Positions 407-37,968 of a stretch of 38,068 nt of DNA are shown here, one piece after another; position 1 is the first letter of the stretch, and the number at the start of each line of letters is the position of its first letter. The notes under the pieces are model-generated. The model was given only the letters and a program-made list of their open reading frames with translations, did no database searches and was not told the origin of the DNA. The DNA is from Macrostomum lignano. Taxonomy: Eukaryota. The stretch spans positions 1 to 38,068 of the forward strand of contig NIVC01004688.1 in NCBI GenBank assembly GCA_002269645.1, given 5' to 3'. The translations under genes were made by a program, and so were the position numbers.

Positions 407-3004
<2,598 letters not shown>

Positions 3005-6982: not shown

Positions 6983-7051
6983 GATTGATTGACAGGTGAC
7001 AGCAGGTTGCCAGGTGGGGGATTGGGGTTGGGATTGGAGTGCTGAATGTGA

Positions 7052-7432
7052 CTGATTGATACCTGAATATGGCACTGATTGACACCTGAATATGGCACTG
7101 ATTGAAACCTGAATATGGCACTGAATGACACCTAAATATGGCACTGATTGACACCTGAATATGGCACTGACTGAGACCTGAATATGGCACTGACTGACAC
7201 CTAAATATGGCAGTGAGTGATACCTGAATATGGCACTGATTGACTCCTGAATATGGCACTGATTGACAGCTGAATATGGCACTGATTGACACCTGAATAT
7301 GGCACTGATTGACACCTGAATATGGCACTGATTGACACCTGAATATGGCACTGATTGACACCTGAATATGGCACTGACTGAGACCTGAATATGGCACTGA
7401 CTGACACCTAAATATGGCACTGACTGACACTA
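7052..7432. repeat. 23-bp minisatellite (ACCTGAATATGGCACTGATTGAC), ~16 copies, immediately upstream of GLO1
   Basis: Read directly; explains the false N-terminal extension of ORF 6602-7420. Confidence 0.93.
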
Positions 7433-8124
7433 ATCATGCTAACAATTATCAAATAAATTGAACACTCAAGGCTTCAGTTTCACAGTCGCACTGAAGCAGG
7501 GAAAAATCTGCCTACAAGCTGCAGTTGCTGACCAGATGCAGGCACAGCTCGCATGCCAATTTGTATTCAGACTCACCGACACTGCAGCAAAGCGATGGCC
7601 GATTGGCTATAATTGACAGGCAACAGAAATCATGCACTGGTATTGCTCAGCTTTTGACAGAATGCATGAAAATTACAATAAGGAAAACGCTACTGACTAC
7701 TAACAGTAGTAGGGAAGTGACACACCAGCTTAGAAACCTACCGCAGATTAAAGTACATTCGGAGACTAAATGATGAGAACAGTATCAATATTAAAACTTA
7801 AACTAATGCAAAGGGACTGGGGTATTCAACAACAGACATGCATATTGAGGACAAATGAAGGTCGATTATTCAAGCCTCTTATTGACAAGTCGCTACTGTT
7901 AATAACAAAACAGTAACAAAGTACATAATGTACTTATAGATGATAACTTTGACTGGCTTACAAAATTCATAACAGCATTTGTGGCTGATGGGTTAAGCTG
8001 CAGATACAGGAATATGTGCTTGAAATATTTAATGACTTATGAGCTTTTAAAATGCATTGAATCTTTATTAAGCATTCGGGACTGAGTGACGTGAATATTA
8101 GGGTTTCTGAGGCTAAGATTAGTC

Positions 8125-8881
8125 TATCAGATTATTCACAATCTGGTCATAGATCTATCAGATTATCCACAATCTGGTCATAGATCTATCAGATGATCCA
8201 TAATCTGGTCATAGATCTATCAGATGATCCACAATCTGGTCATAGATCTATCAGATGATCCACAATGTGGTCATAGATCTATCAGATGATCCACAATCTG
8301 GTCATAGATCTATCAGATGATCCACAATGTGGTCATAGATCTATCAGATGATCCACAATCTGGTCAAAGATCTATCAAATGATCCACAATCTGGTCAAAG
8401 ATCTATCAGATTATCCACAATCTGGTCACACATCTATCAGATTATCCACAATCTGGTCATAGATCTATCAGACTATCCACAATCTGGTCACAGATCTATC
8501 AGATGATCCACAATCTGGCCACAGATCTATCAGATTATCCACAATCTGGTCATAGATCTATCAGATTATCCTCAATCTGGTCACAGATCTATAAGATTAT
8601 CCACAATCTGGAGACAGATCTATCAGATGATCCACAATCTGGTCACAGATCTATCAGACTATCCACAATCTGGTCACACATCTATCAGATTATCCACAAT
8701 CTGGTCACACATCTATCAGATTATCCACAATCTGGTGACAGATCTATCAGATGATCCACAATCTGGTCACAGATCTATCAGATTATCCACAATCTGGTCA
8801 CAGATCTATCAGATGATCCACAATCTGGTCACACATCTATCAGATGATCCACAATCTGGTCACACATCTATCAGATGATCT
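8125..8881. repeat. 31-bp minisatellite (CAGATKATCCACAATCTGGTCAYAGATCTAT), ~24 copies
   Basis: Read directly; 31-aa periodicity of the overlapping ORFs. Confidence 0.93.
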
Positions 8882-8939: not shown

Positions 8940-11900
8940 TCACCAGTTTTCGTGACCGCCGCTGCCGCCACCGCGTGGAAAGCCGCCGTACCGAGCCAGT
9001 CTGGGGTCCGCGCCGCTGGGCTGGCGGGACTGCGGCTGAGGCTGCGGCTGCTGCTGGCTGGCAAAGTGGGCAGCGGAGGCAGAGACGGACCGCCGCCACC
9101 TCCGGCACCTCCCGCACCTGCGCCACTTCCGCCACCCCCGCTGCCGCCGAAGAGCGAGTCGAGAGCCTTCTGAATCTGGCCAATATTTGGCTGGGGAGGC
9201 TGCTGCTTGGACTGATGAGGCTGAGGCTGCTGGCCAGCCGCACCAGCCGCTGCCGGATTCAATAAGCTGAGAATTTTTGCCTGCAAGTCGGCTTGCTGCT
9301 GCAGAATGCTGGCTGCTGGGGCTGCCGGCTGCTTCTGCTGCTCCGGCGTTCTCTGAGGCGCCTGCTGGTGAGGATTCTGAGGTTGCTTAGGCTGCTGATG
9401 ATGCTGAGCCTGCTGTAGATGCTGGGGATGCTGAGGCTGCTGGCTTTGATGAGGCGGAATATTGGGATTGGAACGATTATGCTGCTGCATCATTATGGGA
9501 GGATGCTGAGCCGGCTGCTGCTGATGATGCTGCGGTGGATTTTGAGGAAGCTGGCCGATGGATTGGTTTGACGCAACGGAGACTGGGGCACCCGATTGAT
9601 GATGGCTGGAGTCTGGAATGGAGTGTGGGAAACGAATTTGAGACCATGCTTAAGTTGATGGCGGATTTGAGACAATGCTCAAGGGGATGGCGGATTTGAG
9701 GCCATGCTCAAGGGATGGCGGATTTGAGACCATGCTCAAGGGGATGGCGGATTTGAGGCCATGCTCAAGGGGATGGCGGATTTGAGACCATGCTCAAGGG
9801 GATGGCGGATTTGAGGCCATGCTCAAGGGGATGGCGGATTTGAGACCATGCTCAAGGGGATGGCGGATTTGAGGCCATGCTCAAGGGGATGGCGGATTTG
9901 AGACCATGCTCAAGGGGATGGCGGATTTGAGGCCATGCTCAAGGGGATGGCGGATTTGATTTGTGAAGTTCAAAAGCTGCTTAAACGGGCAGCTCATTAA
10001 CCTTCGTGAGCAGCCCATGCCGGTGAGCTGAGCACCCAACTCACAGCTCCTATCCTGCACGGAGCCGGCACCAGCCGCCAGCCGCTCCCGCCTGGCCGAA
10101 ATGAACTCGGCCAGCTCGTCCAGCTCCCGGCCGCTGAGCATCCGATGATCGGCCAGCAGGTGCAGCAGGTGCATCAGCCGAGGCGTCGGCCGCACGAAAC
10201 CCGCCGGCAGCCGCTCGTTGCCGGTTGGCGCCGCCACCGAAGCCGGAGGCGGCAGCTCGCGAAGGTCGCGAAGCACCGTCTCGAAATGACGGCCCAGCAT
10301 GGACTGGGCGTCGTCTATGGGCATGTTGCGGTGCTCTGCGAGGGGGGGGGGGTGGCGAGTCTTCGAGATGGCAGCTCGATGTCGGGACTCTCTGGCTCTT
10401 CCCGCTGTCTGTCTGTCTCTTGCCGCTGTCTGCTTGTCTCTTTTCCGTTGTCTACCTGTCTCTTTTCCGCTGTCTACCTGTCTCTTTTCCGCTGTCTACC
10501 TGTCTCTTTCGCTGTCTACCTGTCTCTTTTCCGCTGTCTACCTGTCTCTTTCGCTGTCTACCTGTCTCTTTCCGCTGTCTACCTGTCTCTTTCCGCTGTC
10601 TACCTGTCTCTTCCCGCTCTCTACCTGTCTTTGCTTAACTCTCTGTCTTTTTCTCTTTATCTCCTAATTCTCTCTTTACGTCTCAATTGGACTACTACTA
10701 GTCAGACCCATCTCTAAACTCACCAAAGGGCTGCTGGCCATAGAAGATTCTAACAGTACACGATTGGTGCAACTCGTTCTGCCGATTCAAAATCACAGCG
10801 TAGAGCACGCCAGTCCTGGCCAGATCTTCCATAGCCAACGGCATTAGCGATTCGTGTTTGAGCACGATTAGATTAGTGCTCAGGGAGAGCCGGTTTAACC
10901 GACGTTCGACACTTTCAGCATAGGGCCTGTGGCGTGGTGTTAAATGAAAACTGTCGTAGTATCGCATCATTTACACGTATTAAAATAGTTTCAAGGGTCA
11001 GCTGGAGGTGGCATACTAGCACTGAGGTAACGCGTCTAGCTCGGGAGAAGCTGTAAGCTGTAAGGGAAGCAGTGGTCTGGCGCGGCACTTTAAAATGTAC
11101 CAGCTGCCCAGGCTCGATGCCAAGTGCAGTCACATTATTTGGGGCGAAATTGGAATCTCGGCTTGGCTCTGCTCGTGCAAATTATCGCCTTTGAGGGCCA
11201 ACCCCCAAGGCACAGTGTGAAGTGTACATGCCTAACGATCAATAAAGTTCGGGCCGCTGTACACTCCGGAGTGTGTGCCTGCTATAATTAAACTAAACAG
11301 ACTGCCGATATGTATAGTTATACGATATGTATGTAAAACGACACATTGATGCAGAATGATTGTCACGCAAGCAGCAAGAAAATTGATTTTTATTTTAGCA
11401 GTAACACTTTTTCTCATTAAGGTAAGAGAGAAAAAGTAATTAACGCATCGGTGGAAATTGTCACGAAATCAAAACTCAGGTAGTTCTTTCTGCCCTGATT
11501 GCAGCGCATGGGCATTTTGGCGGACGGCGTCCGGCGCGGATCTAATACGGCGCGGCGCGGCGCGTACGGCGCGCGGCGATTAGTACGGCGCGGCGCGGTA
11601 CTAATTAGATGCCGAGGCATTTAGGCTTGATAAGACAGTCATAGTTACTCCTGCCGTTTACCCAAAACTGCGTTAATTTTGCTTTAGAGTTTCTTTCATA
11701 GGTAAGTCATTTCACAGCGTGGCGCAGGTTGTGTAGGCGTCTGGCGTACTTAAGCCATGCGCTGCAATAGGGCTTTCTGCACTTCTACTTTTTTGTATAT
11801 TTCGTGACAACTATTGCCTACACAATAAGAAGTTGCACAGACATAATGCAATAAAGAAGCTGTCTATCACGTTAAGGTATTTTAATAACCAACTCGAATA

Positions 11901-12195: not shown

Positions 12196-14101
12196 TCTAG
12201 TGAAATGTAGAATGTAGATTTAGCCACTACATATATATACGAGTACTTATAAGTCTACCATGATTGCAATTCAAACGATCAAAATGCTGATGGCTTCCAA
12301 TTCAGCTCCGTGAACTTAAAAATTTGGCCAACTGTAATTAAAATGCAAGACATCTTATCAGGATTAAAGAGAACGGGGAGGGGTTGATAAATACTGACTG
12401 AGAAATATCCCACAATGTGTATACTACATTACAGATGTACTATTAAGTATTTTACTGTCTGAAAATTGAAAATTGAAATCAAACATCCATCATATTCTCC
12501 TACATGGCAGTCGTGAAGAGCTATGAAAGACAACGCTCGTATCTACTCAAGAAACAGTATCATGTATAAAATCTACTATAAGACATTCCACTCTTAGATC
12601 CCAGTCCACAAATGTTTACTGTCAAGGACACATTCCTGCAATCTATTGAGACACAATTCTATTGTTGAGGATACATTTATACAATCTAGTGAGACACAAT
12701 TCTACTGTCAAGGACACATTGAGACACAATTCTACTGTCAAGGACACACTGAGACACAATTCTATTGTCAAGGACACATTGAGACACATTTCCACCGTCA
12801 AGGACACAGTGAGACACATTTCCACTGTCAAGGACACATTGAGACACAATTCTACTGTCAAGGACACACTGAGACACAATTCTATTGTCAAGGACATATT
12901 GAGACACATTTCCACCGTCAAGGACACAGTGAGACACAATTCTACTGTCAAGGACACATTGAGACACAATTCTACTGTCAAGGACACACTGAGACACAAT
13001 TCTATTGTCAAGGACACACTGAGACACAATTCTATTGTCAAGGACACATTGAGACACATTTCCACCGTCAAGGACACAGTGAGACACATTTCCACTGTCA
13101 AGGACACATTGAGACACAATTCTACTGTCAAGGACACACTGAGACACAATTCTATTGTCAAGGACACATTGAGACACATTTCCACCGTCAAGGACACAGT
13201 GAGACACAATTCTACTGTCAAGGACACACTGAGACACAATTCTACTGTCAAGGACACATTGAGACACATTTCTACTGTCAAGGACACATTAAGGCACGTT
13301 TCTACCGTCAAGGACACATTAAGACACAATTCTACTGTCAAGGACACATTAAGGCACGTTTCTACCGTCAAGGACACATTAAGACACAATTCTACTGTCA
13401 AGGACATAAACACAGATTCTACATCATAAAACGCATTTTTATACTATTAGACAGGTCCTTTTAAAACCATTTAAAACCAGGACCTAATTAAAACACATCT
13501 AGACAATAATTAGGACCTTGAAGACAGGCTCATAGTAGAATTATACAAAAACCTACCGAACTTCAGTTGACGAGGCGATTACGGCAGCGTCATATGCTCG
13601 CTCAGTTGGATGCAACGGCGGATGACGCTGCAAAGGCACCTGATGCTGACTCTGATTGGATTGATGAGGCGTCGATTCTGGTGCAGGTTGCTGCTGCTGC
13701 TGCTGAGGGAAACTCGGTGGCACCATGGATGAGCCGATCGCCTGAGCTGCACCGACGCTGCTTCTCTCGTCCCGGTCTCGGTCGCGATTAAACGAAGGGC
13801 CGCGTCTGCCTCCTCTGTCCCTGTCACGATCTCGATCTCTGCTGTCTCGAGACCTCTCTCGATCTCTGTCTCTGCCTCTATCCCGGTCCCTGTCTCTATC
13901 CCTATCCCTGTCTCGATCCCGATCTCGACTGCCTGGACGCCGAGGCGGCGGGCTGCGACTTCTGTCGCGACTTCTGCTGTAGCTGCCGCTGCCGCTTCTA
14001 CCGGTAGCGCCGCGGCCGCCGTTCTGAGATTGCGATTGCGACCCCGGCTGTTGCAGAGCCTGCTGCTGTTCCTGCTGTTGCTGCTTCTGGTTTGTAGCCA
14101 T
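8940..14101 (-). CDS. NCOA5: Nuclear receptor coactivator 5 orthologue; exons 13557-14101, 10724-10926, 10045-10335, 8940-9612 (one probable 1-bp indel near 9087), ~570 aa
   Basis: GT-AG introns with consistent phases (2,1,1). RD/RS-rich N-terminus, then YDAAVIASSTEVRPYAESVERR...AMEDLAR...NELHQSCTVRIFYG...EHRNMPIDDA and LLADHRMLSGRELDEL..FI..RRERL, matching the recalled NCOA5 motifs DCSVIVVNKQTKDYAESV, HRSCTVNI, EHRNMP and LLADNRYLT; Q-rich tail. Confidence 0.85.
9643..9959. repeat. 29-bp minisatellite (GGATTTGAGRCCATGCTCAAGGGGATGGC) with strict A/G alternation (58-bp dimer), NCOA5 intron 3
   Basis: About 10 copies alternating GAGAC and GAGGC. Confidence 0.92.
10402..10630. repeat. ~21-22-bp minisatellite (GCTGTCTACCTGTCTCTTTTCC), NCOA5 intron 2
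   Basis: Read directly, ~10 copies. Confidence 0.9.
12151..12192. repeat. (TC)21 microsatellite
   Basis: Read directly. Confidence 0.97.
12618..13406. repeat. 30-bp minisatellite (GAGACACAWTTCYAYYGTCAAGGACACABT), ~25 copies, NCOA5 intron 1
   Basis: Read directly; the 10-aa periodic ORFs in several frames are artefacts of it. Confidence 0.95.
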
Positions 14102-14420: not shown

Positions 14421-14742
14421 GTTGCTATGGTATATCATCCGGTGGCTATGTAAAGTGCCCCTGTTGCTATGGTAAATCATACCGCTATGTAAATTCCTCC
14501 CGTTGCTATGGTAAATAATCTGGTTGCTATGCAAAATACTTAAGTTGCTATGATCAAGCACCGAGTTGCTATGTAAATTACTCCCGTTGCTATGGCAAAT
14601 TACTCCCGTTGCTATGGTAAATAATCTGGTTGCTATGCAAAATACTTCAGTTGCTATGATAAAGCACCGAGTTGCTATGTAAAATACTCCCGTTGCTATG
14701 GTAAATCCAGTAGAGGCTATGCAAAATTATCCCGTTGCTATG
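14421..14742. repeat. 21-bp phased array with conserved GTTGCTATG core and divergent spacers, upstream of NCOA5
   Basis: Cores at 14421, 14463, 14502, 14523, 14544, 14565, 14586, 14608, 14629, 14650, 14671, 14692, 14734. Confidence 0.85.
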
Positions 14743-15595: not shown

Positions 15596-16384
15596 AATAC
15601 TTCTCCTTAAAACTGTAAACCCCAAAAGTAGACATAAGAAAGACACAGTAATAATGCACATATAACTACATAGTTATGTGTATATCAATATTAATATTAT
15701 AAGCTTCACAAAAAATTGCGCTGCTGTAAAACCAGGTTGAAGAAAAATAAGAGAGCAACTTTCACAACAGACGCGTTCTCTAAGTGTGACAGCTATAAAT
15801 ATGAATAATAATCTTATATAAAAATATTATATTAGAATCAAGTTATTAGTAATAATAATTATGTTAGTATACTATTAGCAGTAGAAAAAAACTGCAAAAG
15901 TGGTCGCTAAGTGCACAGAATGGAGCAGTGAAAAATGCCATTGATAACACTAAATGATTTATTAGATATTATATACAATAATACAAGCATTATAGGTGAT
16001 GTAATTATTAAATGATGCATAAATCGACACTGAATCAACAGATCAATAAAATAGATGATAACTTGATTGATTGATTGATAGATAAACAGCAAAGCTAAGC
16101 TTTGTATGAAAAATAACTATGGAAAAATATGGTTTGCATATTAGAGAACTGACTGTAAAAACACTTGTCGATACTGTAACATAACACAGGTAGACTTTCT
16201 TGATAGTCACATCCGAGGTTGAAACAGAATTAACACAACAATTAACATTCAGGTAAATATTATATGAAACAAAAATCGTTGCAGAATTTAACTACAAAGC
16301 TTCTGTAGCTTTTCTTCGTTGATCAAACTTTAGAAACACAAAGCTTTAAAGATCTGAGAAGGTCAAAGCGACGCTATAGAAAGA

Positions 16385-17415
16385 TAAAAAACTTCAGAAT
16401 GGAAGATGATAAACTTCATGGAAGAAGAGGATAGACCTTAGAAACGGGGAGAATAAACTTCAGAGGAGGAGGGGATAAACTACAGGGAGAAAGAGGATAA
16501 ACTTCAGAGAGAGAGGATAAACTTCAGAGAGGGAGAGGATAAACTTCAGGGAGGGAGAGGATAAACTTCAGAGGAGGAGGGGATAAACTACATGGAGAAA
16601 GAGGATAAACTTCGGAGAGAGGATAAACTTCATGGAGGGAGGGGATAAACTACAGGGAGAAAGAGGATAAACTTCATAGGGAGAAGTTAAACTTCAGGGA
16701 GGGAGAGGATAAACTTCAGAAGGAGAAGATCAACTCTAGAGTGGGAGGGGATAAACTTCAGGGAGAAAGACGATAAGCTTCAGAGAGGGAGAGAGGATAA
16801 ACTTCAGGGAGGGAGAGGATAAACTTCAGAGGGAGAATATAAACTTTAGAGAGGGAGGGGATAAACTTCAGAGGGAGGGGATAAACTTCAGGGAGGGGAT
16901 AAACTTCAGGGAGGGGATAAACTCCAGGGAGAAAGACGATAAGCTTCAGAGAGGGAGAAGATAAACTTCAGGGAGAAAGAGGATAAGCTTTAGAGGGAGA
17001 AGATAAACTTCAGAGAGGGAGAGGATAAACTTCAGGGAGAAAGAGGATAAGCTTTAGAGGGGAGAAGATAAGCTTCAGAGAGGGAGAGGATAAACTTCAG
17101 GGAGAAAGAGGATAAGCTTTAGAGGGAGAAGATAAACTTCAGAGAGGGAGAGGATAAACTTCAGGGAGAAAGAGGATAAGCTTTAGAGGGGAGAAGATAA
17201 GCTTCAGAGAGGGAGAGGATAAACTTCAAGGAGAAAGAGTATAAACTTCAGAGAGGGAGGGGATAAACTTCAGAGACGGAGAAGATAAGCTTCAGAGAGG
17301 GAGGCGATAAACAACAGGGAGAAAGAGGATAAACTTCAGAGGGAGAAGATAAACTTCAGGGAGAAAGAGGATAAACTTCAGAGAGGAAGGGGATAAACTT
17401 AAGAAAAAGAGGATG
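16385..17415. repeat. Purine-rich ~20-24-bp minisatellite with core GATAAACTTCAG, ~45 copies, downstream of the glypican-like gene
   Basis: Read directly; three-unit higher-order blocks around 16970-17230. Confidence 0.92.
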
Positions 17416-17581
17416 AAAAAATGAAAGAAAAACTGAAAAAGCTGAAAAAAATTAACTATCAAGCAGAACGCACAGAATATTACACTTATTTCACATACAT
17501 TTACAAAATACTTAAAATACCTAAAACATATCTTGTGTTATTCTTCTTGAAAACAAAACAAAAAACCTATTTTGATTTCCG

Positions 17582-18808
17582 TCAGCGCGCAATCCTCAGC
17601 CTGATAGCCGCATAGCCGAGAGCCGCACAGATTAACACGCTAATCGGATTAAACGCTAATCTGGCGCTGGCCGAGTGGCATCTAGACGTATCTGAATAGA
17701 GGCACTCCCTTTGCTGGCCTCGCATAGCAACCATCTGCGGCCCGTGTACGGAGCCTTCGCCGCGATTGCGTACAGCGCCGCCAGAATCTGGCTCGCCATC
17801 GGGATAAGTCTTGGGCAGCCAGAGATCTGGCGGCGGCGGAGCCCGCGGATCGGGCAATGGCGGGTACATGTCGATGATCTGGTTGCCGCCCGGCTGCGGC
17901 GGTCGCTCACGACGTGGCGGCGGCGGAGGCTCCAGGTCCCCAGACGGTTCGACGTCATTGCCGGGATTTACTGGCGTCAACGAAGACGGACGAAAAGGCG
18001 GTGGTATAAGAGTTGGCTTCGAGTCGCCAGACGTTTGTTCGATAATTTTGTTATAATTATTCAAAGATCCATTCGTTATTAAAGTTGGCGGCGCCCCATC
18101 GCCGGAAGAAAGTATCGTAGGCAGCTTCGGAGGAGGAGGCGGCGGAGCTGATCCGCTCGATGTCAAGTCGAAGTATTGTCTACGAAGGCGTCTCCGCCTT
18201 GACAAAGTTAATTCATTTAGAGTCGATAACAGACTCGAGATAGGCAGCGGCCTGCTCAGATAGTAACTAACGGACGGAGGAGCCAAGCAGGGCACTGCAT
18301 TGCACTTGTCAAACAGGCTCTGCCAATTGAGCAGACCGCGAAATGAGCTCAAACAGGCGTTGTAACGAATAGAATTAGCTTTATCAATCACTCGATCCCA
18401 AACTTTAGACAGCTCAAATAGCGGTTTTAAACAGAGCTTTAAATTCGTGGAATTCCAACCGGCATTGACAACAGTTTCTGTGCCAGCTTCACCGCGGCAG
18501 AGGCTACAGAATCCGGAGGATTTTAGATGAACAGTGAGACAATCTGAAGGAGCTGCAGCCGCGGCACTGATAGGCAGCTCTTGTCTGACATAATCCAACT
18601 GGCGATAGTATCGTTTAATACGATTATTGGAGCAAGTATTGGAATTAATCACTGTCAGATGATTGCGCAATAGATCTGCCAATTGTTTGCGAGCAACCTT
18701 AATTAGCGAAGCTTCTAGTTGAGAAGCGCAACATTCACCGCTACAAATTGGTCCGCTTGGTCCACCTTTGACTGAGTCTAGGATGCCTAGGCTGGCAAAT
18801 GCCTGGCT
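17582..18808 (-). pseudogene. Glypican-like GPI-anchored proteoglycan, 3' portion of an intronless CDS interrupted by the LINE
   Basis: SQAFASLG...PICSGECCASQLEASL, DCL...FCSLCRG, LCL...ELSKVWDRVID and LFDKC resemble conserved glypican Cys blocks; RRRRLRR basic site; acidic Ser-Gly sites; hydrophobic C-terminal tail. In frame with the 5' portion across the TSD. Confidence 0.65.
18795..18808. repeat. Target-site duplication, 3'-side copy (GCAAATGCCTGGCT)
   Basis: Identical 14-mer at 24643-24656; bases on both sides differ between the two copies. Confidence 0.95.
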
Positions 18809-18917
18809 TGACTTACTTGACTTAGCTGCAGGGCGGTCCGAAGACGCAGCGGGGAGGCGAGCGTCGCCCATTCCGCTAATCCCTGAAAGACCCGCATAGG
18901 CTAGGGCGCGGGGCCGG

Positions 18918-21900
18918 TCAGGGAGGTCTGCCGGTCCTGTCTGCAGCGTTGTCTTCGGTGGGGAAGACGGAGGCTCGCTTGGTGGCCCGGAGGAACCGGA
19001 TGAGCCGTGGGATGTTCTCGGGCCGGCAAACGTCGTCCAGGGACGGGTTGGGCCCGAGGTGGTTGAGCCGGTCTCGGTTGAAGGCCGGGCAGTAGCAGAC
19101 GAAGTGCATGGCATCTTCATTCTCGAGGCTGCAGAAGGGGCAGAGTTCACTCCGGCGAACACATCGGAGGAAGCAGTGCCTGGCAAAGCAACCGTGACCT
19201 GTGAAGGTCATAGTGAGAGCGCGGATATCTTTTCGATTTTGATTCAAAAGGATTCTCCGCAGCTTGAGGGACGGATTGGGCACTGCCGCACGAGATTGGC
19301 GGCAGTTGGAGATACCATCCCATCTGCGCAAGTGCAGGATGTCCGCCCAGTCGTTAATCTGACGATTAATGACTGTGGCGGGGATGGGGGCCAGGGGCAC
19401 GGGGCCAAGGGGCGAGCCGGAACAGCCCGCCTTAGCGAGGGAGTCGGCGAGCTCGTTACCTTTGAAGCCGGCGTGTCCTGGGATCCACGTGAGCCGGACG
19501 GTGTTCCTCCGAGCCAGCTTGTTGAGCTGCCCGATACAGTCGCGGACTGTTCGGGAGTTCGTAGTGGTGTGACACAGGGCCTGTAAAGCGGCCTGGCTGT
19601 CAGAGTGGAAGAAGATTCTTTTGTCCTTGAAGTCCTTGCGGTGGAGCTCAGCTGCACAGGAGCTGATGGCAAGGACTTCATTCTGGAAGACGCTGGAGAG
19701 TCTGCCAGTGTGTTGGGCGTGAGTAGCAATCACGCGGCCGTTGATAAGGATGCAGACTCCAAAGCCGGATAAACCGTCTTTGGAGGATCCGTCAGTGAAG
19801 CAGTGAACCTCCTGAGGGGCCCAGCTGTCGTTGGCGTTCTCCCTGGAGGGGATCGTGACCTTGAAGCGTTGGTAGAGGTTGAGGGAGCGCGGTTCAGCGT
19901 CCGAAAGGACAGCCGCACTCCCACTCTCCTCCAGAACTTTAAGGCACAGGTCAGAGTGCGGCAGGAGCTTGCGCTTCGCCATCGCTCTTTGTGGCTTGAA
20001 GCTAACACCAGCCTCGATGAGCCGGCGGGTGGTTTTAGCAGCCTCGCGACGGACAAAGATGTCCAGAGGCGGGAGGCAGAGAAAGGCGTTGAGGCCGTCA
20101 AAGGGAGCAGAGAGCGGGGCATTCAGGATCATGCGGCACGCACGTCCCTGCACCTTTTTGAGGGCTTCGTGGCAGGTTTTAATCTGCAAGGCGCTGGTCC
20201 AGACCAGGCCGGCGTATGTAACGGCCGGTCGGACCATTGCGGTATAGATCCACCAGAGACGCTTTGGGGTGAGGCCCCAGGTGGTGCCGACGGCTCTGCG
20301 CAGCTGCGCAAGAATCGCGAGGGCTTTTTTGGTTTTGGCCTGGACGTGGGTGGACCAGCTCAGCCGGTGGTCCAGCGTAACGCCGAGACACTTGGTTTGC
20401 TTGCAGGATGGAATTTCCACTCCGTAAAGCTTTAGTGGGCGAATACGCCAGTTTACCCTGCTGGTGAACATGATCGCGACAGTTTTGGTCTCGGAGAGCC
20501 TGAGGCCGCACCTGTCCGCCCAACGTTCAGCAGAGCGAATGAAGTTTTGCAAAAGATCTCTAAGGGTTTCAGGTGACGGTCCGGATGCCACGGCTGTGAC
20601 ATCATCGGCGTAACCGACCTTGAGGATGGGGTCAAGATGGCTGTCCTGGAGGAGCTCATCGATGACCATGTTCCAGAGAACTGGAGAGAGGACACCGCCC
20701 TGGGGGCTGCCTTTGCAGACGGTTACCGTCCGTTGGTGGCCCAACAGGTGTGCGGTGGCAGTACGGTGGCTGATCATATACATGATCCACCGGGTGAGGT
20801 GCGAGTGGGTTCCTCTAGCACGTAGAGCTCTGTCAAAGGCCTCAAAGAGGACATTATCGAAGGCTCCAACAATGTCGAGGAAGACAGCGAGAGCGTAGCC
20901 ATTACCAAGAACGGCTTTCTCCAGCATGTCAACCAGAACGTGAAGCGCGCTCTCCGTGGACCTGCCTGCCCGAAAGGCATGCTGGTTCTCACTGAGCGGC
21001 TTGTTCTTCAGTTCCACAGAGAGGAGGCGCCAGAGCACCAGTCTCTCTAACAGCTTCACCAATGAGGAGGTGAGGCTAATTGGTCTGAAGGATTTAATGG
21101 ACCGGTAGTCCGGTCGGCCAGGCTTGGGGATAAAGACCACCTTGGCCTCGGTCCAGGATTTCGGAACAAAGCCGAGCACAATGCAGGCTTTCAGAAGCCG
21201 GCAAAGGTTCCGCAGGAAACCGGTGCATTTCACCGCCTCCCGCAGGAAGGCTGGCACAACGCCGTCCGGTCCTGGGGATTTGAAGGGTTTGAAGGAGGAG
21301 ACAGCTTTAGTAACGCGGTCCTCCGTGATGATTGAGTCAGCCAGTACGTGTCCGCCCACTGAGTGGTCAGGGGGGCCGGGCCTAGCTGGCTCGTTCGGGA
21401 AAAACGCTGTTAGCATCGCTTCCAGTGTTTCTCCTGGGTTCTCAGTGAGCGAGCCGTCGGCTCTCTTGACTGAGGAGAGTTTGGACATTTTGTCCAGGGT
21501 GAGGGCTTTAACGATTCTGGAGGTGGGGCGGGAGCCCTCAAGTTCCTCACAGTATTCGCGCCACTTGTTGGTTTTGGCGTTCCTAACCTGCCTCTTGAAC
21601 TCGTGGATAGAGTTCAGGTAGGCGGTTTGGTCGGCCGGGTTTTTAGTTTTTTGGGCCCTGCGGTGAAGCCTTTTGGCTCTGCGACGGAGGTCGCCAAGCT
21701 GCGGGTTCCACCATGGGGCCGACTGTTTGCCTTTATATGCCTTTAGTGGGCATGAGGCTTCGAAGGCAGCAGTGAGCGAGTCCGTAAGTGCGGCCGCAAA
21801 TTCATCTGCTTCTTCGCAGGTGTTGATGGAGACTGGAGCGCTAGTGCAACGATAGGTCTCCTCCAGGGCAAGCCTGAAGGCGGTCCAGTCGGTATTCCTA

Positions 21901-22622
21901 GCATTCCGTTTCCAGTAAAGCTGGCCTGCGTTACGGGCGCTGGCCAGCGTGAAAGAGATGAACTTGTGATCGGAGAGGGACGCCTCAGGAAGCACCCGCC
22001 ATTCCCTAGTGCTCTGGAAGAGCCTGGGCGTGGCGAGGGTGGCATCCAGCACCTCCGATCGGCGTCCGTTATTGAAGGTAGGGGTACTACCCGAGTTACA
22101 GAACTCAAGGGTTGTAGTAGCAATATAAGCCAGGAAGTCTTCACCTCTCTGGTTTATATCAGAACTGCCCCAGTGGGTGTGGTGGGCATTGATGTCACCT
22201 GCCACGAGCAGCTCATAGTTTCTGGTGGAGCAGAGCTCGACCAGTGTGACAAGCTCTACTGGGATCATCTCGCCGTCGCCCGGTAGGTAAACCGAGGCGA
22301 TGAGGGTAGTCCTCCCAGGGAGTATGTCTTCAGACTGGATGACACAGATGTCCCTGGTGGACAGGTCTGATCTGAGCCATGCGTTAATAGAACTGGACAC
22401 CATGATGCAGGATCTTGGTGCCAGGTTTCCCTCCCGGGTACCAGCGGTTAAACACTGGTAGCCGGTGGGGACATGTTGGGGGCTGCCCCTAAGCGTCCAA
22501 GGTTCCTGGATAAGGATAATCCCTGGCACGTATTGGTCAGTGTGCTTCAAGAGGTTGACTGAAGCAGCAATGCTGTGCTGCAGGTTGACCTGCAAGCAGT
22601 GGATGCCCTGGGAGACAGTCAT
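18918..22622 (-). CDS. LINE ORF2 (1234 aa): apurinic-like endonuclease, reverse transcriptase, RNase H, CCHC knuckle
   Basis: APE motifs ILIQEP, SVYLP, AGDINAHH, SDH; RT motifs FRPISL, QHAF, FLDIVGAFD, GSPQGGVLSP, YADD; RNase H motifs FTDGS, QNEVLA, SDSQAA, HAGFKGNELAD; C-terminal CPFC-x7-H-x4-C. Confidence 0.97.
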   Translation of the reverse strand: MTVSQGIHCLQVNLQHSIAASVNLLKHTDQYVPGIILIQEPWTLRGSPQHVPTGYQCLTAGTREGNLAPRSCIMVSSSINAWLRSDLSTRDICVIQSEDILPGRTTLIASVYLPGDGEMIPVELVTLVELCSTRNYELLVAGDINAHHTHWGSSDINQRGEDFLAYIATTTLEFCNSGSTPTFNNGRRSEVLDATLATPRLFQSTREWRVLPEASLSDHKFISFTLASARNAGQLYWKRNARNTDWTAFRLALEETYRCTSAPVSINTCEEADEFAAALTDSLTAAFEASCPLKAYKGKQSAPWWNPQLGDLRRRAKRLHRRAQKTKNPADQTAYLNSIHEFKRQVRNAKTNKWREYCEELEGSRPTSRIVKALTLDKMSKLSSVKRADGSLTENPGETLEAMLTAFFPNEPARPGPPDHSVGGHVLADSIITEDRVTKAVSSFKPFKSPGPDGVVPAFLREAVKCTGFLRNLCRLLKACIVLGFVPKSWTEAKVVFIPKPGRPDYRSIKSFRPISLTSSLVKLLERLVLWRLLSVELKNKPLSENQHAFRAGRSTESALHVLVDMLEKAVLGNGYALAVFLDIVGAFDNVLFEAFDRALRARGTHSHLTRWIMYMISHRTATAHLLGHQRTVTVCKGSPQGGVLSPVLWNMVIDELLQDSHLDPILKVGYADDVTAVASGPSPETLRDLLQNFIRSAERWADRCGLRLSETKTVAIMFTSRVNWRIRPLKLYGVEIPSCKQTKCLGVTLDHRLSWSTHVQAKTKKALAILAQLRRAVGTTWGLTPKRLWWIYTAMVRPAVTYAGLVWTSALQIKTCHEALKKVQGRACRMILNAPLSAPFDGLNAFLCLPPLDIFVRREAAKTTRRLIEAGVSFKPQRAMAKRKLLPHSDLCLKVLEESGSAAVLSDAEPRSLNLYQRFKVTIPSRENANDSWAPQEVHCFTDGSSKDGLSGFGVCILINGRVIATHAQHTGRLSSVFQNEVLAISSCAAELHRKDFKDKRIFFHSDSQAALQALCHTTTNSRTVRDCIGQLNKLARRNTVRLTWIPGHAGFKGNELADSLAKAGCSGSPLGPVPLAPIPATVINRQINDWADILHLRRWDGISNCRQSRAAVPNPSLKLRRILLNQNRKDIRALTMTFTGHGCFARHCFLRCVRRSELCPFCSLENEDAMHFVCYCPAFNRDRLNHLGPNPSLDDVCRPENIPRLIRFLRATKRASVFPTEDNAADRTGRPP

Positions 22623-22624
22623 GT

Positions 22625-24154
22625 CTACTGTCCAGGGGAGGAGAAAAGCAACTCATTCTCAGCCTCATCGGTGAGAGTTGAGTCGCCAATTTCCATTGGC
22701 TCAGGCTCAGCCGCCTCCCCAGCCGCCGCGGAGGCGGACACGGCGCCCACGGCAGGTGAGTCACCTAGCCGCGCTACACCGCCCTCCTCCCCAGCGACTG
22801 GGGTACGGCTGCTGCCTTCGCCTTGCGCCCCGCCGTCGGGAGTCTGAGCTCGGCCGGCAGCGTCCTCCTGGTGGTAATCCCACCAGTTGGAAGGCTGAGC
22901 CGTGCCGTCGTCCAGTTCCCTCGGCTGGCTTTCAGTGTTTTTTCGAGCGGCACGAGTCTGCTCGAGGTGAAGTCTCAGAGACTGAGCTTCGTCAAGTGCG
23001 CGCTGGATTAGACCGGACCGCCGGCTACTGCGGGCGGGTCTACGTCCGCGCGAGGCGGACTCAGCAGCGCGAATAGCCTTGTTAGGCTCGGGATCGGGTT
23101 GCTGCTGCCGCTTGGCCGGCGGGGCATGAGCCCCAGCTCCGGGAGCGGCGCGCTTCCCGTCTTTCTTGGTCTCCACCTTGCCCTCCTCACAGCGGAGGAT
23201 GGTCAGTTGATGGAGACCAAGGTGGAGGTTTGTGCCGTGCGGTAGCCGCTTGGCCCATCCCTCCGTCAGGCCGAGGATGACTGTGGCCCCGGTCGTGCCC
23301 TTGCGGACCGTGCTGTGGTACACAAGACCACTGGCGTCGAGATCCGGGTGCCGCTTGAGCAGGAGCTGCCGCAGCTGCTCCCCGGACTTGATTGCACTGT
23401 CGGCCGGGACCCAAATCCGATGGCGGATGGTCTTCGGCCGCTCGCTCTCCAAGGCGAAGGTCAGCTGGCCCAGGTCGCTGTGCCAGTCGAACTTGGGCAG
23501 CTGATCCCGCAGGAGCTGGGTGCTCTCCTCGGATTTGCACCACAGTAGGATGCACCCGTTCGCCTTGGTGGACTTGACGATGTCCACGAAGACGCCCTCC
23601 AGGGTTAGATTGAGCAAGCCCTCGTCGATGGTACGCCACGCGACGTCGAGCTGCTCGGGCGTCAGGTCGAAATCCCCGCCGAGGATCATCACGGCGGGTT
23701 GCAGCGGCTGCTTGACCTTGGACGCGTAGGACTCGGAGGTCTTGAGCGGGGCCGCTTTGTCTTTGGAAGGCGGTAGGCCGGCAGGGTTGCCCCCCTGAGA
23801 GCCCGAGGACACGGCGGTTCCTGACGGCCCAGCCGCGCCACCGGACTCCCCAGAGGGCCTCCCCGCTGCGGTGGCTCCCGAAGGCCTCACCGCGGCTTGC
23901 GTGCCCTCCTCAGACGCAGCAGCAGCCCGCTTCTCCTGCCGCTTACGGTTGCGGCGGATGTTCCGCTGTCGTCGAGACTCGGCCGTGCGCGGTCGGCTAG
24001 ACTGGCGGCCAGGGTGATCGGCGGCAGCGTCAGCTGGCCCGGTTGGACCAGGTTGGGCGTTGGTGCTACCAGTGGTAGCTACCGGAGCGGCTGATCCCGG
24101 TGAGCCAGAGGCGACCGGGTCAGTTTCTTTAGGGATGGTGGCGTTAGTGGCCAT
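22625..24154 (-). CDS. LINE ORF1 (509 aa), DUF4780-like core flanked by disordered basic and acidic regions, no gag CCHC knuckles
   Basis: Lies directly upstream of ORF2 (TAG-AC-ATG). The core GCILLWCKSEES..LLR..L...W....L.......P....RIWVP resembles ORF1 of LOA/Lian elements (recalled similarity). Confidence 0.8.
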   Translation of the reverse strand: MATNATIPKETDPVASGSPGSAAPVATTGSTNAQPGPTGPADAAADHPGRQSSRPRTAESRRQRNIRRNRKRQEKRAAAASEEGTQAAVRPSGATAAGRPSGESGGAAGPSGTAVSSGSQGGNPAGLPPSKDKAAPLKTSESYASKVKQPLQPAVMILGGDFDLTPEQLDVAWRTIDEGLLNLTLEGVFVDIVKSTKANGCILLWCKSEESTQLLRDQLPKFDWHSDLGQLTFALESERPKTIRHRIWVPADSAIKSGEQLRQLLLKRHPDLDASGLVYHSTVRKGTTGATVILGLTEGWAKRLPHGTNLHLGLHQLTILRCEEGKVETKKDGKRAAPGAGAHAPPAKRQQQPDPEPNKAIRAAESASRGRRPARSSRRSGLIQRALDEAQSLRLHLEQTRAARKNTESQPRELDDGTAQPSNWWDYHQEDAAGRAQTPDGGAQGEGSSRTPVAGEEGGVARLGDSPAVGAVSASAAAGEAAEPEPMEIGDSTLTDEAENELLFSSPGQ

Positions 24155-24642
24155 AGCTGAAAAGCGGGGGAGGGCTACTCGTTATGCGAGTTGAGTACCC
24201 GACTGGCCGACACCTCAAGCCAGCCGGTTTGAAAAAAGGACCGCTAGCGACCGGACTACTCCCCGGCCTTCCAGCCCATCGGCACGGTCAAACACCTTAG
24301 GCATTAGAGGGTACGTTAAGCAGTACCACGGCCTGCAGGCTGGTGAGCCAGACCCGCATACCCAAATTCGGCCGAAGCCACTGGATAGGGTCGCCAGCGC
24401 CGGAGCCCAGTCTGTCCAGCAGCCCTAGGGTCTGCCTTGAACACACGCGGGGACGAGTACCCCTGGGTCGACTTGCGAGACAGCGTGGGGGAGTCTGCGG
24501 CTGCCAGAGGCAAATAGAGGGTGCAGACCTCCCACCAGCCTTGACCTGCTGAAGATGGGGGCAGGCGTGAAGCATCGCAGACCTTAGCTCGTAGGCCTAG
24601 TCTGTCTCATACTTCACTGGCATGCTGAATACGCCTTCGCGT

Positions 24643-24656
24643 GCAAATGCCTGGCT
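24643..24656. repeat. Target-site duplication, 5'-side copy (GCAAATGCCTGGCT)
   Basis: Identical to 18795-18808. Confidence 0.95.
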
Positions 24657-24749
24657 AGCTGGCTTGCAATTGATCGATGATTTTGCCGACTTTGTTATTG
24701 GAGACAGGATGGCCAAGGTGGTTAAGAAAAGCAACTGGCTAAGCAGCAT
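24643..24749 (-). pseudogene. Glypican-like gene, 5' portion (signal peptide and first Cys)
   Basis: ATG 24749 with A at -3: MLLSQLLFLTTLAILSPITKSA-KSSINCKPASQAFA. 107 nt + 1213 nt (18794-17582) = 1320 nt = 439 aa + stop once the LINE and one TSD copy are removed. Confidence 0.75.
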
Positions 24750-25579
24750 CTTCGAGTACTGATTGTAGAAGTTTCGTTGTTTCTTTTGTTTGCTTACTGA
24801 CACTGCAACGTGTGTTCAAGAGTTATCAGATATATACTACGTACAGCGTGCTTGTAGCAAAGATTTAGCACTTGAAATAAGAGAGTTAGCCAATAGCTAC
24901 AGTCCTACTGCAATAGCAGCTTTAGGCCAACCCGTACGCTTCTACTTACAAGGAGCATACAGCGCAACACTGTGCCAAGCTTACAGTGCAATAAAAGCAT
25001 ATAGAAAGCCATTGGACTAAACCAATAGTAATTAAGGCAATAACAGAGGCAGTTTTTGTTCGACTAAATAATTATCATTTTATGGAACTAGGAAGTAAGG
25101 CAAATAACATGAAGCATGTTTGAAAATACGAAAAAACGCTTAATACTTTATTCATACTATTCTATATAGCATAAGTTGTGTTCACATTACTAGACCAAAA
25201 GAAAATTGGACAACTGCCCATGGATTTCAATTTATTTTTTCTTCAGAAACTACAACTCTTTCACTTTCGTGTCACCCTCCCCCCTGGGGCATAAGCCATT
25301 CATACTTACTTCGCGGGGACAAGGGAAAAGGGGGAATGTTTTCCCCCTCCCGTCAGAGCGCTTGAAATCACTAGCAAATGTTAGTAAAGCAAAGAAAACC
25401 ATGCAGTGAAAGAATTCGCTTGCAGCTATAATAAAGGAACTAAAGTACGATATAATCAAAGCCATATTACTGCACTAAAAAGTATAGACTCGTGACAGAA
25501 TAGCAGGACAAAAAAGACAGATTAGCATCGTTGGATGCTAGTTTGTTCTAAACAGAAACGAAAAAAATACAAAAAATCG

Positions 25580-28999: not shown

Positions 29000-29984
29000 A
29001 GCTTCTTATAGACTATAACATTTTGGTTTCTTGTTTTAAATGTATTTTTCTACATTTCTCCTTTCTTCTTTTTATTTTTATAGTAATACTTGTTAAATAT
29101 TTATCATTTTTGCTTTGTCTTTATATTTTTAATGTTTAACCATTATATCTTTTATATAGCTTTTATAGGCATTTATAATAAATAATAACATAGAAACTAT
29201 TATACTATATATACATCAGCAATATATATCCCACGGATTTACATAGATTATCAGTGTTGGGCACCAGTCCATTAATATGCATTAATCTATTAAAAAGCAT
29301 TAATAAACATTAAGATTTTATGCTACATTACATTTTAGGTGTACATTACCAGACTGCCATTAAGATTTTTTGTACTAATAGATTAACAAATTTGTGTTAA
29401 TAATTTTGTAAGTCAACAACAAATTCATTGTTAATGGTAATGACAAAGTTAATAACCAAAGACACAGGAAAGAACAAAAATAAAAGTCTGACAAGAAGTT
29501 ACAACATTATGAATGTATTTGAATTTACTTAAATGGCTAACTAATATTTTTGTTTAAAACAATAAACATGCAAATATAACAACTTCTTACTAATGAACTT
29601 TAATAATGAATTAAAATTGAAAACTTTATTGCTTGCATCTGAGCATGCATCAATTTCAAATTTTTACCAGGACTTCATTATAGTAGCTGTTCTATGCAGA
29701 TATAATTGATTTATTGCTGGATTTGTTTCTGTTACAGAGGGCAACCAATTTGTTTAATTTGTTGACTTCAATTAATGAAATTTGTTGATTTGATTGTAAG
29801 CAATTTGTTGATTGTTAATTTTGTTGATAATTGATAATTGTTAATTTGTTAAGTCTTAATAGTAGATACATGGATATTTATTTCCAACCATTTGAATAGC
29901 ATGCATTTTATACAATAAAACAAATTATAAGACAATTTGACTCACTAGATAAACAATGGATTAAAACAACTACATATACTATAC

Positions 29985-35290: not shown

Positions 35291-37968
35291 ATGATTGCCC
35301 CATTGGAAGTCATTCAAGGGGACTTCAGCCCAGAAGAAGCTCAAAAGATAATTATTGAAACTAGCCAAGATTCTTGTATCACTCTTCCACCAGTGAGTCC
35401 AAAAGGTGGAGAAGTTTATCTGTACTACTTTGATGATGAGAGCAGTAAGTGAAAACATCATTTTCAGTGCACATTGCTTCTACTTTCTACTTTGATTTGT
35501 TAATATGGCTCTGGCTCTGGCCTACCTGCTGGGGTTTGGTACACCCAGCCAACCTGACAGTTAAGCTGAGGTGTGACTGACTCATGCCACTTTTTATGTC
35601 CATTTTTCAACTTTCTTTTTATATGGCACCTTTTTCACTTCCTCAACTTGTCCTATTGATTGCAAACTGCTTTAACTGGATATATAGTACAAATGTACCT
35701 TTGTGGGTCCAAAATTAATGGCAAATATTTTTTTGCCAAATGTATAATGAATTAGCCAAATATTTAAATTATTCGTTTGCATGTCTAGAGTGCCAATTTA
35801 AATTAAAAAATTAGTTCTCAAAATAATGCACTTATGCTATTTAATTGTATATATGAATCCACCCAACCCATTTATTTTAGAGTGCAACGACTATCTCTGT
35901 GACCAATATCAGTGGCGGAACAATGGCGCATTTAAATTGCTTCCAGCCCAGTCACCTCTTGTTAAGAAAACTTATTTTATTCCTCGAGTCAAGGATTCAG
36001 ATAAGCAAGGTCAGCCGCTCTTTCGTCGAAATGTCTACCAACTCATTGACAGTAGTAGCTCAGAGCTGCTTCGCCGACGGCTTATTGTTTATATTGGTGA
36101 CCATAGCCAAGGCAGTCTTGAGCCCCATGGCAATTGTCGCAGCCCTTCTGCCAATCCATTTCAACAAACGTGTCCTAGTGTTCTGAAGGAATTGCAGCAG
36201 CGCCTGGCTGAAAAAGGCAGTTCTCCGAGCCAGGTGTATCAGACTGCCACAACGTCTGCCTCTGTTGATCCTCAACACGAAGCAGTGTTAAAGCCGCGTG
36301 ATCACTACCAAGTGGCTAATGTACGAAAAGTAGTCCTACAGAATCTTCGATTATCAAATGACGACGTTGTAAACTGTATCGAACTTGGAGTGGATCTTGT
36401 TAACTGCATTCATCAGATGGATTTTCTACCGCATCTTGGTGTAATTGTTGCACTTCCTGAAATGCTAACAATGCTCGACCAAATTTTGCAGTGCCAAAAT
36501 TTGCCATGCAAGAACTTACTTGCGTACGATACCACTTTTAACCTAGGTGATTTTTTCTTTCGACCCTGACCTTTCGCCATCCATTGCTTCTTTCTCAACA
36601 AGATGTAATGCCTGTTTTGCCAGTTGCATTTTTACTTCATGACCGCAAGCTAGAAGCCATCCACAGTGATTTTTTTTCACTGATGTTGCGCAAGATACCT
36701 TCCCTGTCTACTAATCGAGGTGTTCTTGTCACGGATTGTGAAGTAGCAATAAGTAACGCGGTGAACCGTGTTTTGAGTGACATGAGCCACCTTCAATGCT
36801 GGATCCACATCGTTTGCGATGTCAAGTTTTGGCTGCATAAGAACGGATGTTCCTCTGAAGAAAATGGTATCAAATCCCAACTCGAGGATCTTTGGCGCTC
36901 TCAAACTCTCGAAGAGTATTGCAGCAAGCTTGAGGATGTCTCGTCTAGGTGGAGTGCAAAACTTTGTGATTATTACTTTTCTCAGTGGCATGCCATGGTT
37001 CAGTGCAAAGTCGGTCGCTGGGTACTTGAGCCACTTGGTTTGTACAATGCCTTTAGTGGAGTGACTATTAATCAAGCCGAGGCGTTCAACACTGTTGTTA
37101 AGCGTGCTCAGAACTGGAAAGAAGTTCGTTTGGACGAGGCGATACTAACCGTGTACTATCTTCAAGCATATTTACTGCACGAAACGAATCGGGCCTTTGC
37201 AAACCTCGGTAGCTTTCGGCTGCGTCCGGAATTTCAACAGTTAGCCCAGGCGGTGCCAGCAGTCAATTCACACCCATTCATTGAACCAGCCGAAGTCGTA
37301 CAGCGAATCAAGCATCGCAGGAGGCCAGTCGATGAAAACGATGCGAGCGATAGAAAAGCTAAGACACCAAGCTGTCACGTTCCTAAGTCTCAGATGGCCC
37401 GCGCGGAAGATTTAATTCGCCAGAATAAAGTTGTTGGTGTTCCTAGTACGGGATCATTTACTGTGATTGGTACAACAGGTGATTGTCACAGTGTGCGCCT
37501 TTTTCCAAAGGAGAAATGTACCTGCCCCGCAAGTGGGACGTGCTACCACATTATTGCTTGTCGACTGTCAATTAACCTTAAGGGAAACTTTAAAGCAGGC
37601 AATGCTCAACTGCTTCGACGCAACTTGCTCCCAAAAAAAATAGACGATCAGGGAGAAAGCGTCCAAGGGATATTGACTTAGACAAGTCGGCATCCGACTC
37701 CGACGTTGAAGTTCGTGGCATCAAGAAAGTCTGCCATATTGAGAGCGCAAGCGACCAATCTGACGCGGAGCCTTCTAGTGATAATAATGCCGCTCTTGCT
37801 GAAGAACATACAGCTAAGTCTGCTGAAGATCGATGCGCCGGCTACACTGAAGATCGATGCGCCGGCTCCGCTGAAGATCGATGCGCCGGCCACTCGCACT
37901 ACACAGCGATGACTCCACTGAATCGATGCGCCGGCTCCGCTGAAGATCGATGCGCCGGCTTCCACTGA
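35291..37968 (+). mobile_element. Mutator-like (MULE) DDE transposase with SWIM zinc finger; spliced (exon 35291-35444, intron 35445-35880, exon from 35881); two apparent -1 frameshifts
   Basis: Exon 1 MIAPLEV...PPVSPKGGEVYLY joins in phase 1 to KCNDYLCDQYQWRNNG; catalytic-type motifs YDTTFNLGDF, VTDCE, CWIH, NQAEAFN; SWIM CTC-x5-C-x-H. Adding one T at 36551-36556 and one A at 37633-37640 gives ~747 aa including RRSGRKRPR. TIRs not found in the window. Confidence 0.8.

Follow-up and report, generated by a model that had tools for sequence, protein, structure and literature searches.

A stretch of 38,068 nucleotides of the Macrostomum lignano genome (contig NIVC01004688.1 of assembly GCA_002269645.1, here called the window) carries a full-length long interspersed nuclear element (LINE), a retrotransposon without long terminal repeats (LTRs), inside the coding sequence (CDS) of the gene Mlig022675. 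We regard it as highly probable that an autonomous, RNase H-bearing LINE inserted recently into this coding exon. The element is enclosed by a perfect 14-bp target-site duplication (TSD) and is missing from a second, collinear copy of the locus in which the gene is uninterrupted. Coordinates refer to the window unless stated otherwise, and element and host gene both lie on the minus strand. The overall reading of the initial annotation, a recent LINE knock-out of a host open reading frame (ORF), is supported by the analysis described below.

The insertion site and its empty counterpart

The features of the insertion site and of the interrupted gene are as follows.

18809-24642, minus strand: complete LINE of 5,834 bp (a non-LTR retrotransposon) that the collinear locus L001 lacks, with boundaries set by the TSD
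24643-24656, no strand assigned: TSD copy at the 5' junction of the element, GCAAATGCCTGGCT on the plus strand and AGCCAGGCATTTGC in the sense of the gene; single copy at L001 10145-10158
18795-18808, no strand assigned: TSD copy at the 3' junction of the element, whose opening AG, read on the sense strand, doubles as the end of the tail repeat
24643-24749, minus strand: host CDS nt 1-107, from Met1 to codon 36, with a signal-peptide-like N-terminus and the first Cys
17582-18808, minus strand: host CDS nt 94-1320 including the stop, with a Cys-rich helical region, a Pro-rich region and a C-terminal hydrophobic segment
24597-24749, minus strand: truncated ORF as assembled, 36 native and 14 LINE-derived residues, stop codon 24597-24599

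The 14-mer GCAAATGCCTGGCT has exactly two copies in the window, those listed above, and none elsewhere in it on either strand; the interval that separates them is the 5,834 bp of the element. A 14-bp repeat alone is not improbable (the calculated chance expectation for exact pairs within 38 kb is ∼2.7), and the duplication is decisive because it matches, to the base, insertion boundaries that were set independently by alignment to the empty site. That site lies in L001 (GCA_002269645.1, NIVC01000404.1:158170-179540; L001 coordinates count within this segment), which is collinear in reverse orientation with ∼27 kb of the window (∼7.5-34.5 kb) at 96-99.6% identity. One alignment block joins L001 5341-10158 to window 29463-24643 and the next joins L001 10145-16257 to window 18808-12687; the two share 14 bases, L001 10145-10158, which are one copy of the 14-mer at the exact junction. 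The flanks abut directly in L001, which makes it a genuine empty site. The empty copy on which the initial annotation had staked its reading thus exists, uninterrupted and with 100% protein identity.

In minus-strand orientation, the 5' junction is ...GCAAGCCAGCT-AGCCAGGCATTTGC-ACGCGAAGGCG... and the 3' junction is ...CCCTGCAGC-TAAGTCAAG-TAAGTCA-AGCCAGGCATTTGC-CAGCCTAGG..., the 3' end of the element itself reading ...CTGCAGC TAAGTCAAG TAAGTCA and passing directly into AGCCAGGCATTTGC. The tail is therefore (TAAGTCAAG)2, with its second 9-mer unit finished by the AG of the TSD, a 2-bp microhomology; the length of the TSD is given as 14 bp (12-14 bp). The insertion point falls within codon 36 of the host CDS, the duplicated bases being CDS nt 94-107, and the LINE is in the sense orientation relative to Mlig022675, which has a single coding exon. 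This base-level reading bears out what the initial annotation had described at the site: a perfect 14-bp TSD around an element with two intact ORFs, a tail repeat that runs into the TSD with AG common to both, flanks that join into a 439-residue ORF in frame to the stop at 17582, and a stop at 24597 in the sequence as assembled. The joined ORF reads MLLSQLL...IRLRIAR*, with its stop codon at 17582-17584. The interrupted copy can encode only a 50-residue peptide. At the 5' junction the repeat can be extended imperfectly to 24 nt (83% identity, with six matches in the ten added bases), which was judged to be due to chance and not to be 5' microhomology.

Between the joined flanks of the window and L001 the host CDS is identical at 1,320 of 1,320 nt, and the encoded protein is 100% identical over its full length to the GenBank entry 'hypothetical protein BOX15_Mlig022675g1, partial [Macrostomum lignano]'. 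To call the gene hidden was an overstatement, as it is already annotated on the empty copy. Across ∼16000-18808 and 24643-24930 (∼3.1 kb) there are no differences of any kind from L001; divergence is ∼0.3-0.4% in the 10 kb upstream and higher in repeats, and most other differences between the two sequences fall in minisatellite arrays. The absence of substitutions in ∼3.1 kb of flank, together with a second copy of the element that is identical at 1,087 of 1,090 compared residues (see below), supports the earlier description of the insertion as very recent. The uninterrupted state is ancestral and persists in a nearly identical copy of the locus, because a coherent 439-codon frame across both flanks would otherwise be a coincidence.

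The two loci and the interrupted gene

The three subgenome copies of M. lignano differ by 1.4-2.4% in single-nucleotide polymorphisms (SNPs) and by 32-36% when indels are counted, large indels making up the bulk of the difference (PMC10733133). SNP divergence between the window and L001 is far below the inter-subgenome figure. Since the flanks are much closer to each other than subgenome copies are, the insertion is younger than the common ancestor of the two sequences, itself very recent. Alleles, copies on duplicated chromosomes and the same locus in two assemblies or sublines all fit these observations.

The alternative that fares best, with a likelihood that we put slightly under an even chance, is that duplication or homeology relates the filled locus to the empty one (in the L1, L2 or S subgenomes or the extra large chromosomes of line DV1), the insertion being fixed in one redundant copy; it would then represent early gene fractionation after polyploidy and not a segregating knock-out. 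The Mlig_3_7 assembly is highly redundant, with 180-312 Mb duplicated at at least 95% identity (PMC5730564), the differences among the three subgenome copies are mostly indels and the inbred line reportedly has negligible heterozygosity inside any one subgenome (PMC10733133), and two presence/absence differences of miniature inverted-repeat transposable elements (MITEs) also separate the loci. The local divergence (zero in ∼3.1 kb, ∼0.3-0.4% upstream) nevertheless falls far short of 1.4-2.4%, and a value this low fits alleles, very recent duplicates or a single locus in two assemblies. Whichever of these applies, only the population status of the insertion would change, not the nature of the feature. 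Of the earlier description of the insertion as polymorphic or haplotype-specific, the part that stands is that filled and empty states both exist; this situation is not separable from fixation in one duplicated or homeologous copy.

The MITE-like element of the window lies at 11494-11772 (279 bp), has imperfect terminal inverted repeats (TIRs) of ∼18 bp (CCTGATTGCAGCGCATGG) and is flanked by an 8-bp TSD, CTTTCTGC, at 11486-11493 and 11773-11780; L001 lacks the element and has a single copy of the 8-mer. The length of this TSD suggests hAT-type mobilisation. The reciprocal case is a 276-bp element at L001 5065-5340, with perfect 14-bp TIRs (CATACATGCGCAAC) and an 8-bp TSD, GTCTTTGG, for which the window has the empty site at 29456-29463. 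The internal 111 bp of the L001 element are 92% identical to the interior of the window element, whereas the termini differ. Two such differences within the same 27 kb indicate that indels of this kind are frequent in this genome, in line with the published comparison (PMC10733133). Most of the difference from L001 lies in dense arrays of minisatellites, which have periods of 20-64 bp and reach 47 copies; they include 8123-8880, 9636-9959, 10392-10630, 12690-13406, 14421-14742, 16389-17404 and others. Of these, 16389-17404 is a 22/64-bp array that starts ∼180 bp beyond the stop codon of the host gene, on its downstream side.

The restored host ORF comprises 1,320 nt and encodes 439 residues. 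The protein has a hydrophobic, signal-like N-terminal segment, 12 Cys within residues 28-205, a region that is predicted to be helical, a proline content of 25% in residues 250-400 and a hydrophobic C-terminal segment ahead of RLRIAR; the low-complexity Pro-rich region makes up ∼35% of its length. A phmmer search against 1.84 billion representative proteins and a word-indexed search of 5.8 billion proteins each returned only the protein itself, and a single annotated intact copy of the gene is on record in the latter. No Pfam family was matched above threshold. A sub-threshold match to Glypican (PF01153; E = 0.0018, 17.6 bits against a gathering cut-off of 26.4) covers profile positions 25-88, whereas membership of that family entails an above-cut-off match over the ∼550-position core, which the host protein does not show. 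A sequence search of the PDB gave chance-level matches only, with no glypican even at E ≤ 10, and a single-sequence AlphaFold2 (AF2) model with a predicted local distance difference test (pLDDT) score of 42.6 was too poor for a fold search.

In common with glypicans, the host protein has a signal-peptide-like N-terminus, an N-terminal C...PxxICxxxxCC..LE motif, a Cys-rich core of predicted helical structure, SG dipeptides in a disordered region further downstream and a hydrophobic anchor at the C-terminus. In contrast to glypicans, in which the core spans ∼400-450 residues with 14 conserved Cys, its core has ∼200 residues and 12 Cys, the match is sub-threshold and there are no homologues. The glypican match is thus the only lead on this protein, and from its sequence we treat the gene as encoding an orphan protein that is probably secreted or membrane-anchored. 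Mlig_3_7 was annotated in GenBank from a transcriptome assembled with genome guidance (PMC5730564), so that the annotation of the gene implies a transcript for the intact copy.

A further alternative, which we consider rather doubtful, denies the host ORF the status of a functional protein-coding gene and sees in it a frame that is an orphan, evolves fast or is decaying, in which case 'knock-out' would be too strong a word. The lack of any homologue among the 1.84 billion proteins or of a Pfam family above threshold, the low pLDDT and the ∼35% of low-complexity Pro-rich sequence are what it would lead one to expect. A 439-codon ORF is, however, very unlikely to occur by chance, and the signal-peptide-like N-terminus, the 12 Cys, the C-terminal hydrophobic anchor, the annotation from transcript evidence and the weak glypican CC-motif match (E = 0.0018) all speak for a gene.

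It is very improbable that the LINE entered the contig through a faulty join of long reads: M. lignano assemblies are rich in repeats and 36% of Mlig_3_7 by length is in chimeric scaffolds (PMC10733133), but a mis-join would not yield a perfect 14-bp target duplication around an element that is complete from base 1 through the tail repeat, nor would both flanks stay in register with the empty site to the base. Least credible of all is that the LINE was there first and that L001 lost it through recombination between the 14-bp repeats, since, although such a deletion would leave one TSD copy and by sequence be the same as a never-occupied site, recombination between 14-bp repeats is rare, the element is young (intact ORFs and a near-identical second copy) and the long in-frame ORF with its coherent protein architecture would have been restored by coincidence.

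The element and its relatives

The element that interrupts Mlig022675 is a LINE, as seen from a reverse transcriptase (RT) with a YxDD motif, an AP-endonuclease N-terminal to the RT, the absence of LTRs and TIRs, the TSD and the simple-repeat tail. Its mobility is evident from its presence and absence at an otherwise identical site and from a second copy elsewhere. Its parts are as follows.

24155-24642, minus strand: 5' untranslated region (UTR), 488 nt
22625-24154, minus strand: ORF1, 509 residues, uninterrupted
18918-22622, minus strand: ORF2, 1,234 residues, uninterrupted, with AP-endonuclease, RT, RNase H and a C-terminal Cys/His motif
21957-22592, minus strand: ORF2 AP-endonuclease, residues 11-222 (Pfam Exo_endo_phos_2, E = 2.8e-20; Exo_endo_phos, E = 1.1e-7)
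20373-21131, minus strand: ORF2 RT, residues 498-750 (Pfam RVT_1, E = 2.3e-34; YADD at 671)
19422-19814, minus strand: ORF2 RNase H, residues 937-1067 (Pfam RNase_H, E = 1e-12; acidic catalytic residues intact)
ORF2 residues ∼1161-1178, minus strand: C-terminal Cys/His motif, from motif reading
18809-18917, minus strand: 3' UTR, 109 nt, with the tail TAAGTCAAGTAAGTCA at 18809-18824

The GC content is 57-67% within the LINE and 37-50% in the flanks. A search of the element for LTRs or TIRs found none, the 14-bp TSD being its only terminal repeat, and no other fragments of this LINE were found in the window; an Rfam scan of the whole window gave no match. The sequences used for comparison are a Logan contig (L002) and contig Ga0394873_0103931 of the JGI metagenome 3300038379 (L003). 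Element nt 31-71, a block of 41 nt, are 83% identical to nt 33-73 of L002, in the 5' region of that related family, which is consistent with a full-length copy. PDB sequence matches of ORF2 include L1 ORF2p, R2 and the TRAS1 endonuclease. The stop codon of ORF1 and the ATG of ORF2 are separated by 2 nt (TAG AC ATG) and the two ORFs are in different frames; this close spacing makes it probable that ORF2 is translated by termination-reinitiation. In the environmental L003 LINE, ORF2 overlaps the ORF1 stop by 4 nt.

The layout of the ORF1 protein comprises a basic N-terminal helix, a core resembling tandem RNA-recognition motifs (RRMs), a C-terminal helix and an acidic disordered tail. In an AF2 model built from a two-sequence alignment, the predicted core (residues ∼150-321, window ∼23192-23707) contains two β-α-β-β-α-β units with pLDDT values of 72-90. 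A Foldseek search with this core gave the tandem RRMs of IMP3 (RRM12), U2AF65, Npl3 and HuR as the top PDB matches (probability ∼1, E ∼5e-4), and we therefore predict, on the strength of the model, that the core is a tandem RRM. ORF1 has no Pfam match even at E ≤ 1, and neither motif reading nor Pfam revealed a CCHC zinc knuckle in it. RRM-bearing LINE ORF1 proteins constitute types I and II of Khazina & Weichenrieder, and the predicted structure of ORF1 has the RRM fold that characterizes them.

The nearest full-length relatives are at most 60% identical. Comparison with L002 gives protein identities of 60% for ORF2 and 36% for ORF1, and 67% for the nucleotides of ORF2; L003 ORF1 is 47% identical to that of the window by BLASTP and 56% over aligned columns. 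The presence of L003 in a metagenome indicates that relatives of the family occur in organisms sampled by environmental DNA. Conservation with L002 is far stronger over the last ∼75 nt of the 3' UTR than over the coding sequence: CCCTGCAGCTAAGTCAA at the terminus and a segment able to form a hairpin are kept, as is the terminal motif CTGCAGCTAAGTCAA, in an element whose ORF2 protein is only 60% identical. The number of terminal 9-mer units is two in the window copy and one in L002. The predicted fold of the 3' UTR is no more stable than those of shuffled sequences (z = 0.21).

In 'stringent-type' LINEs (for example eel UnaL2, of CR1/L2 type), the RT recognizes an element of the 3' UTR together with terminal repeats. 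The window LINE resembles these in the conservation of its 3'-terminal ∼75 nt and CTGCAGCTAAGTCAA across families and in the variable number of terminal units; it differs in that its 3' structure lacks folding-energy support, the comparison covering two sequences. From this conservation we infer that the 3' end may be a cis-acting RT recognition element, with slippage on the terminal repeat.

With respect to classification, the element is placed among the RNase H-bearing 'I group' LINEs, at the level of the group and not of a clade. This group comprises the I, LOA, Nimb, Ingi, Tad1 and R1-like clades; the grouping is said to come from Kapitonov et al. in 2009. The RNase H domain lies C-terminal to the RT (RNase_H, E = 1e-12), as the group requires. 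Further similarities are the presence of two ORFs, the order AP-endonuclease, RT, RNase H and C-terminal Cys/His motif in ORF2, an endonuclease that is closest in the PDB to that of TRAS1 (R1 clade), a 3' end formed by a short tandem repeat and not by poly(A), a variable TSD of LINE type and an RRM-type ORF1. The hallmarks of the I clade sensu stricto are lacking, however: ORF1 is without the CCHC knuckles typical of I- and Jockey-type ORF1, and the tail unit is TAAGTCAAG and not (TAA)n.

These features suggest how the insertion into Mlig022675 may have taken place by target-primed reverse transcription. The ORF2 endonuclease would nick the plus strand after T18808 (...CCTGGCT^AGCTGG...), the freed 3' end (...CT) would pair with the terminal AG of the TAAGTCAAG repeat of the RNA and prime cDNA synthesis, and a staggered second nick 14 bp away would give rise to the duplication. 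Recognition by the RT would depend on the conserved 3' UTR together with the 9-mer repeat at the terminus, as in the 'stringent' LINEs, and the number of repeats (two units here, one in L002) may reflect slippage; the ORF1 protein would act as a tandem-RRM RNA chaperone. The insertion would be very young, having come after the separation of two copies of the locus between which ∼3.1 kb are free of substitutions, and the family is probably still active.

Family activity and biological meaning

A UniProt protein of M. lignano (P0004) is a chimeric model in which ORF1 of this LINE and two ORF2 segments are joined to an NDR-like kinase. It is identical to the window LINE at 501 of 501 residues of ORF1 (residues 1-501) and at 100/102 and 486/487 residues of the ORF2 segments, or 1,087/1,090 in total. 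The kinase was not found in the window, and P0004 therefore represents a second, near-identical copy of the LINE at another locus. Its annotation as a 'non-specific serine/threonine protein kinase' is an artefact from that copy, and several other M. lignano UniProt models appear to be similarly contaminated by related LINEs. Several more models of the species hold relatives of the LINE at 50-75% identity, so that M. lignano hosts several related families. Exact-product look-ups of ORF1, ORF2 and the truncated 50-residue peptide gave no match, probably because the GenBank annotation excluded transcripts that overlap repeats. In the literature on M. lignano we found work on LTR elements only and no description of a LINE family; this family has apparently not been described in the species before.

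The intact ORFs, the perfect TSD, the undiverged flanks and the near-identical second copy make current or very recent activity of the family likely, although not proven. Some points weigh against the reading of a young insertion by an active family with a 3' recognition signal. Activity is deduced from the intactness of the element and a single further copy that is almost identical; the look-ups gave no other record of an exact product of ORF1 or ORF2; and the proposed 3' recognition structure draws on conservation in two sequences only, with a fold z of 0.21. It is possible but unlikely that the insertion arose during the laboratory history of the sequenced inbred line or still segregates there. 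If that were so, transposition of this LINE family would be going on in M. lignano today. For free-living, transgenesis-ready flatworms this would be the first demonstration of an active non-LTR element, and the LINE would act as a natural insertional mutagen that erodes redundant gene copies in a neopolyploid in real time.

Other parts of the window contain traces of further genes and transposons. An ORF of 365 residues at 36584-37681 (plus strand) has a weak match, below threshold, to a MULE/Mutator transposase (E = 4.7e-4) and is adjoined at 35826-36569 (plus strand) by an ORF of 247 residues without a match; the two may be the remnant of a Mutator-like DNA transposon. An ORF segment at 6602-7420 (minus strand) matches the Glyoxalase superfamily (E = 1.2e-9) and, over a short length, CIAPIN1 (E = 1.4e-5). 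These matches are probably exons of cellular genes that partly overlap a 23-bp minisatellite.

The Mlig022675 locus is a clean, ordinary case of recent knock-out by a transposon and leaves existing understanding unchallenged. Gene-disrupting LINE insertions are known from human L1 in F8 or APC and from the I-factor and Doc of Drosophila. As in those cases, the insertion is exonic and in sense orientation, has a TSD and truncates the reading frame, and an empty allele is available; the present case differs in that the disrupted gene is an orphan and in that the genome is a redundant neopolyploid one, in which the expected fitness cost is low because of the redundant copies. At least one intact copy of the host gene remains, which bears on any phenotypic effect of its loss. 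Indels of transposable elements between near-identical copies are common in this genome and form the norm.

The base-precise pair of filled and empty sites provides a marker for the assignment of haplotypes or subgenomes and a test of non-LTR activity in a regeneration model with piRNA silencing in its somatic stem cells. What is known of LINE diversity is enlarged a little by the conserved 3' end and by an ORF1 with a predicted tandem RRM but neither a zinc knuckle nor a Pfam family. For M. lignano itself, the pair constitutes a concrete case of the loss of one gene copy, driven by a transposable element, soon after whole-genome duplication.

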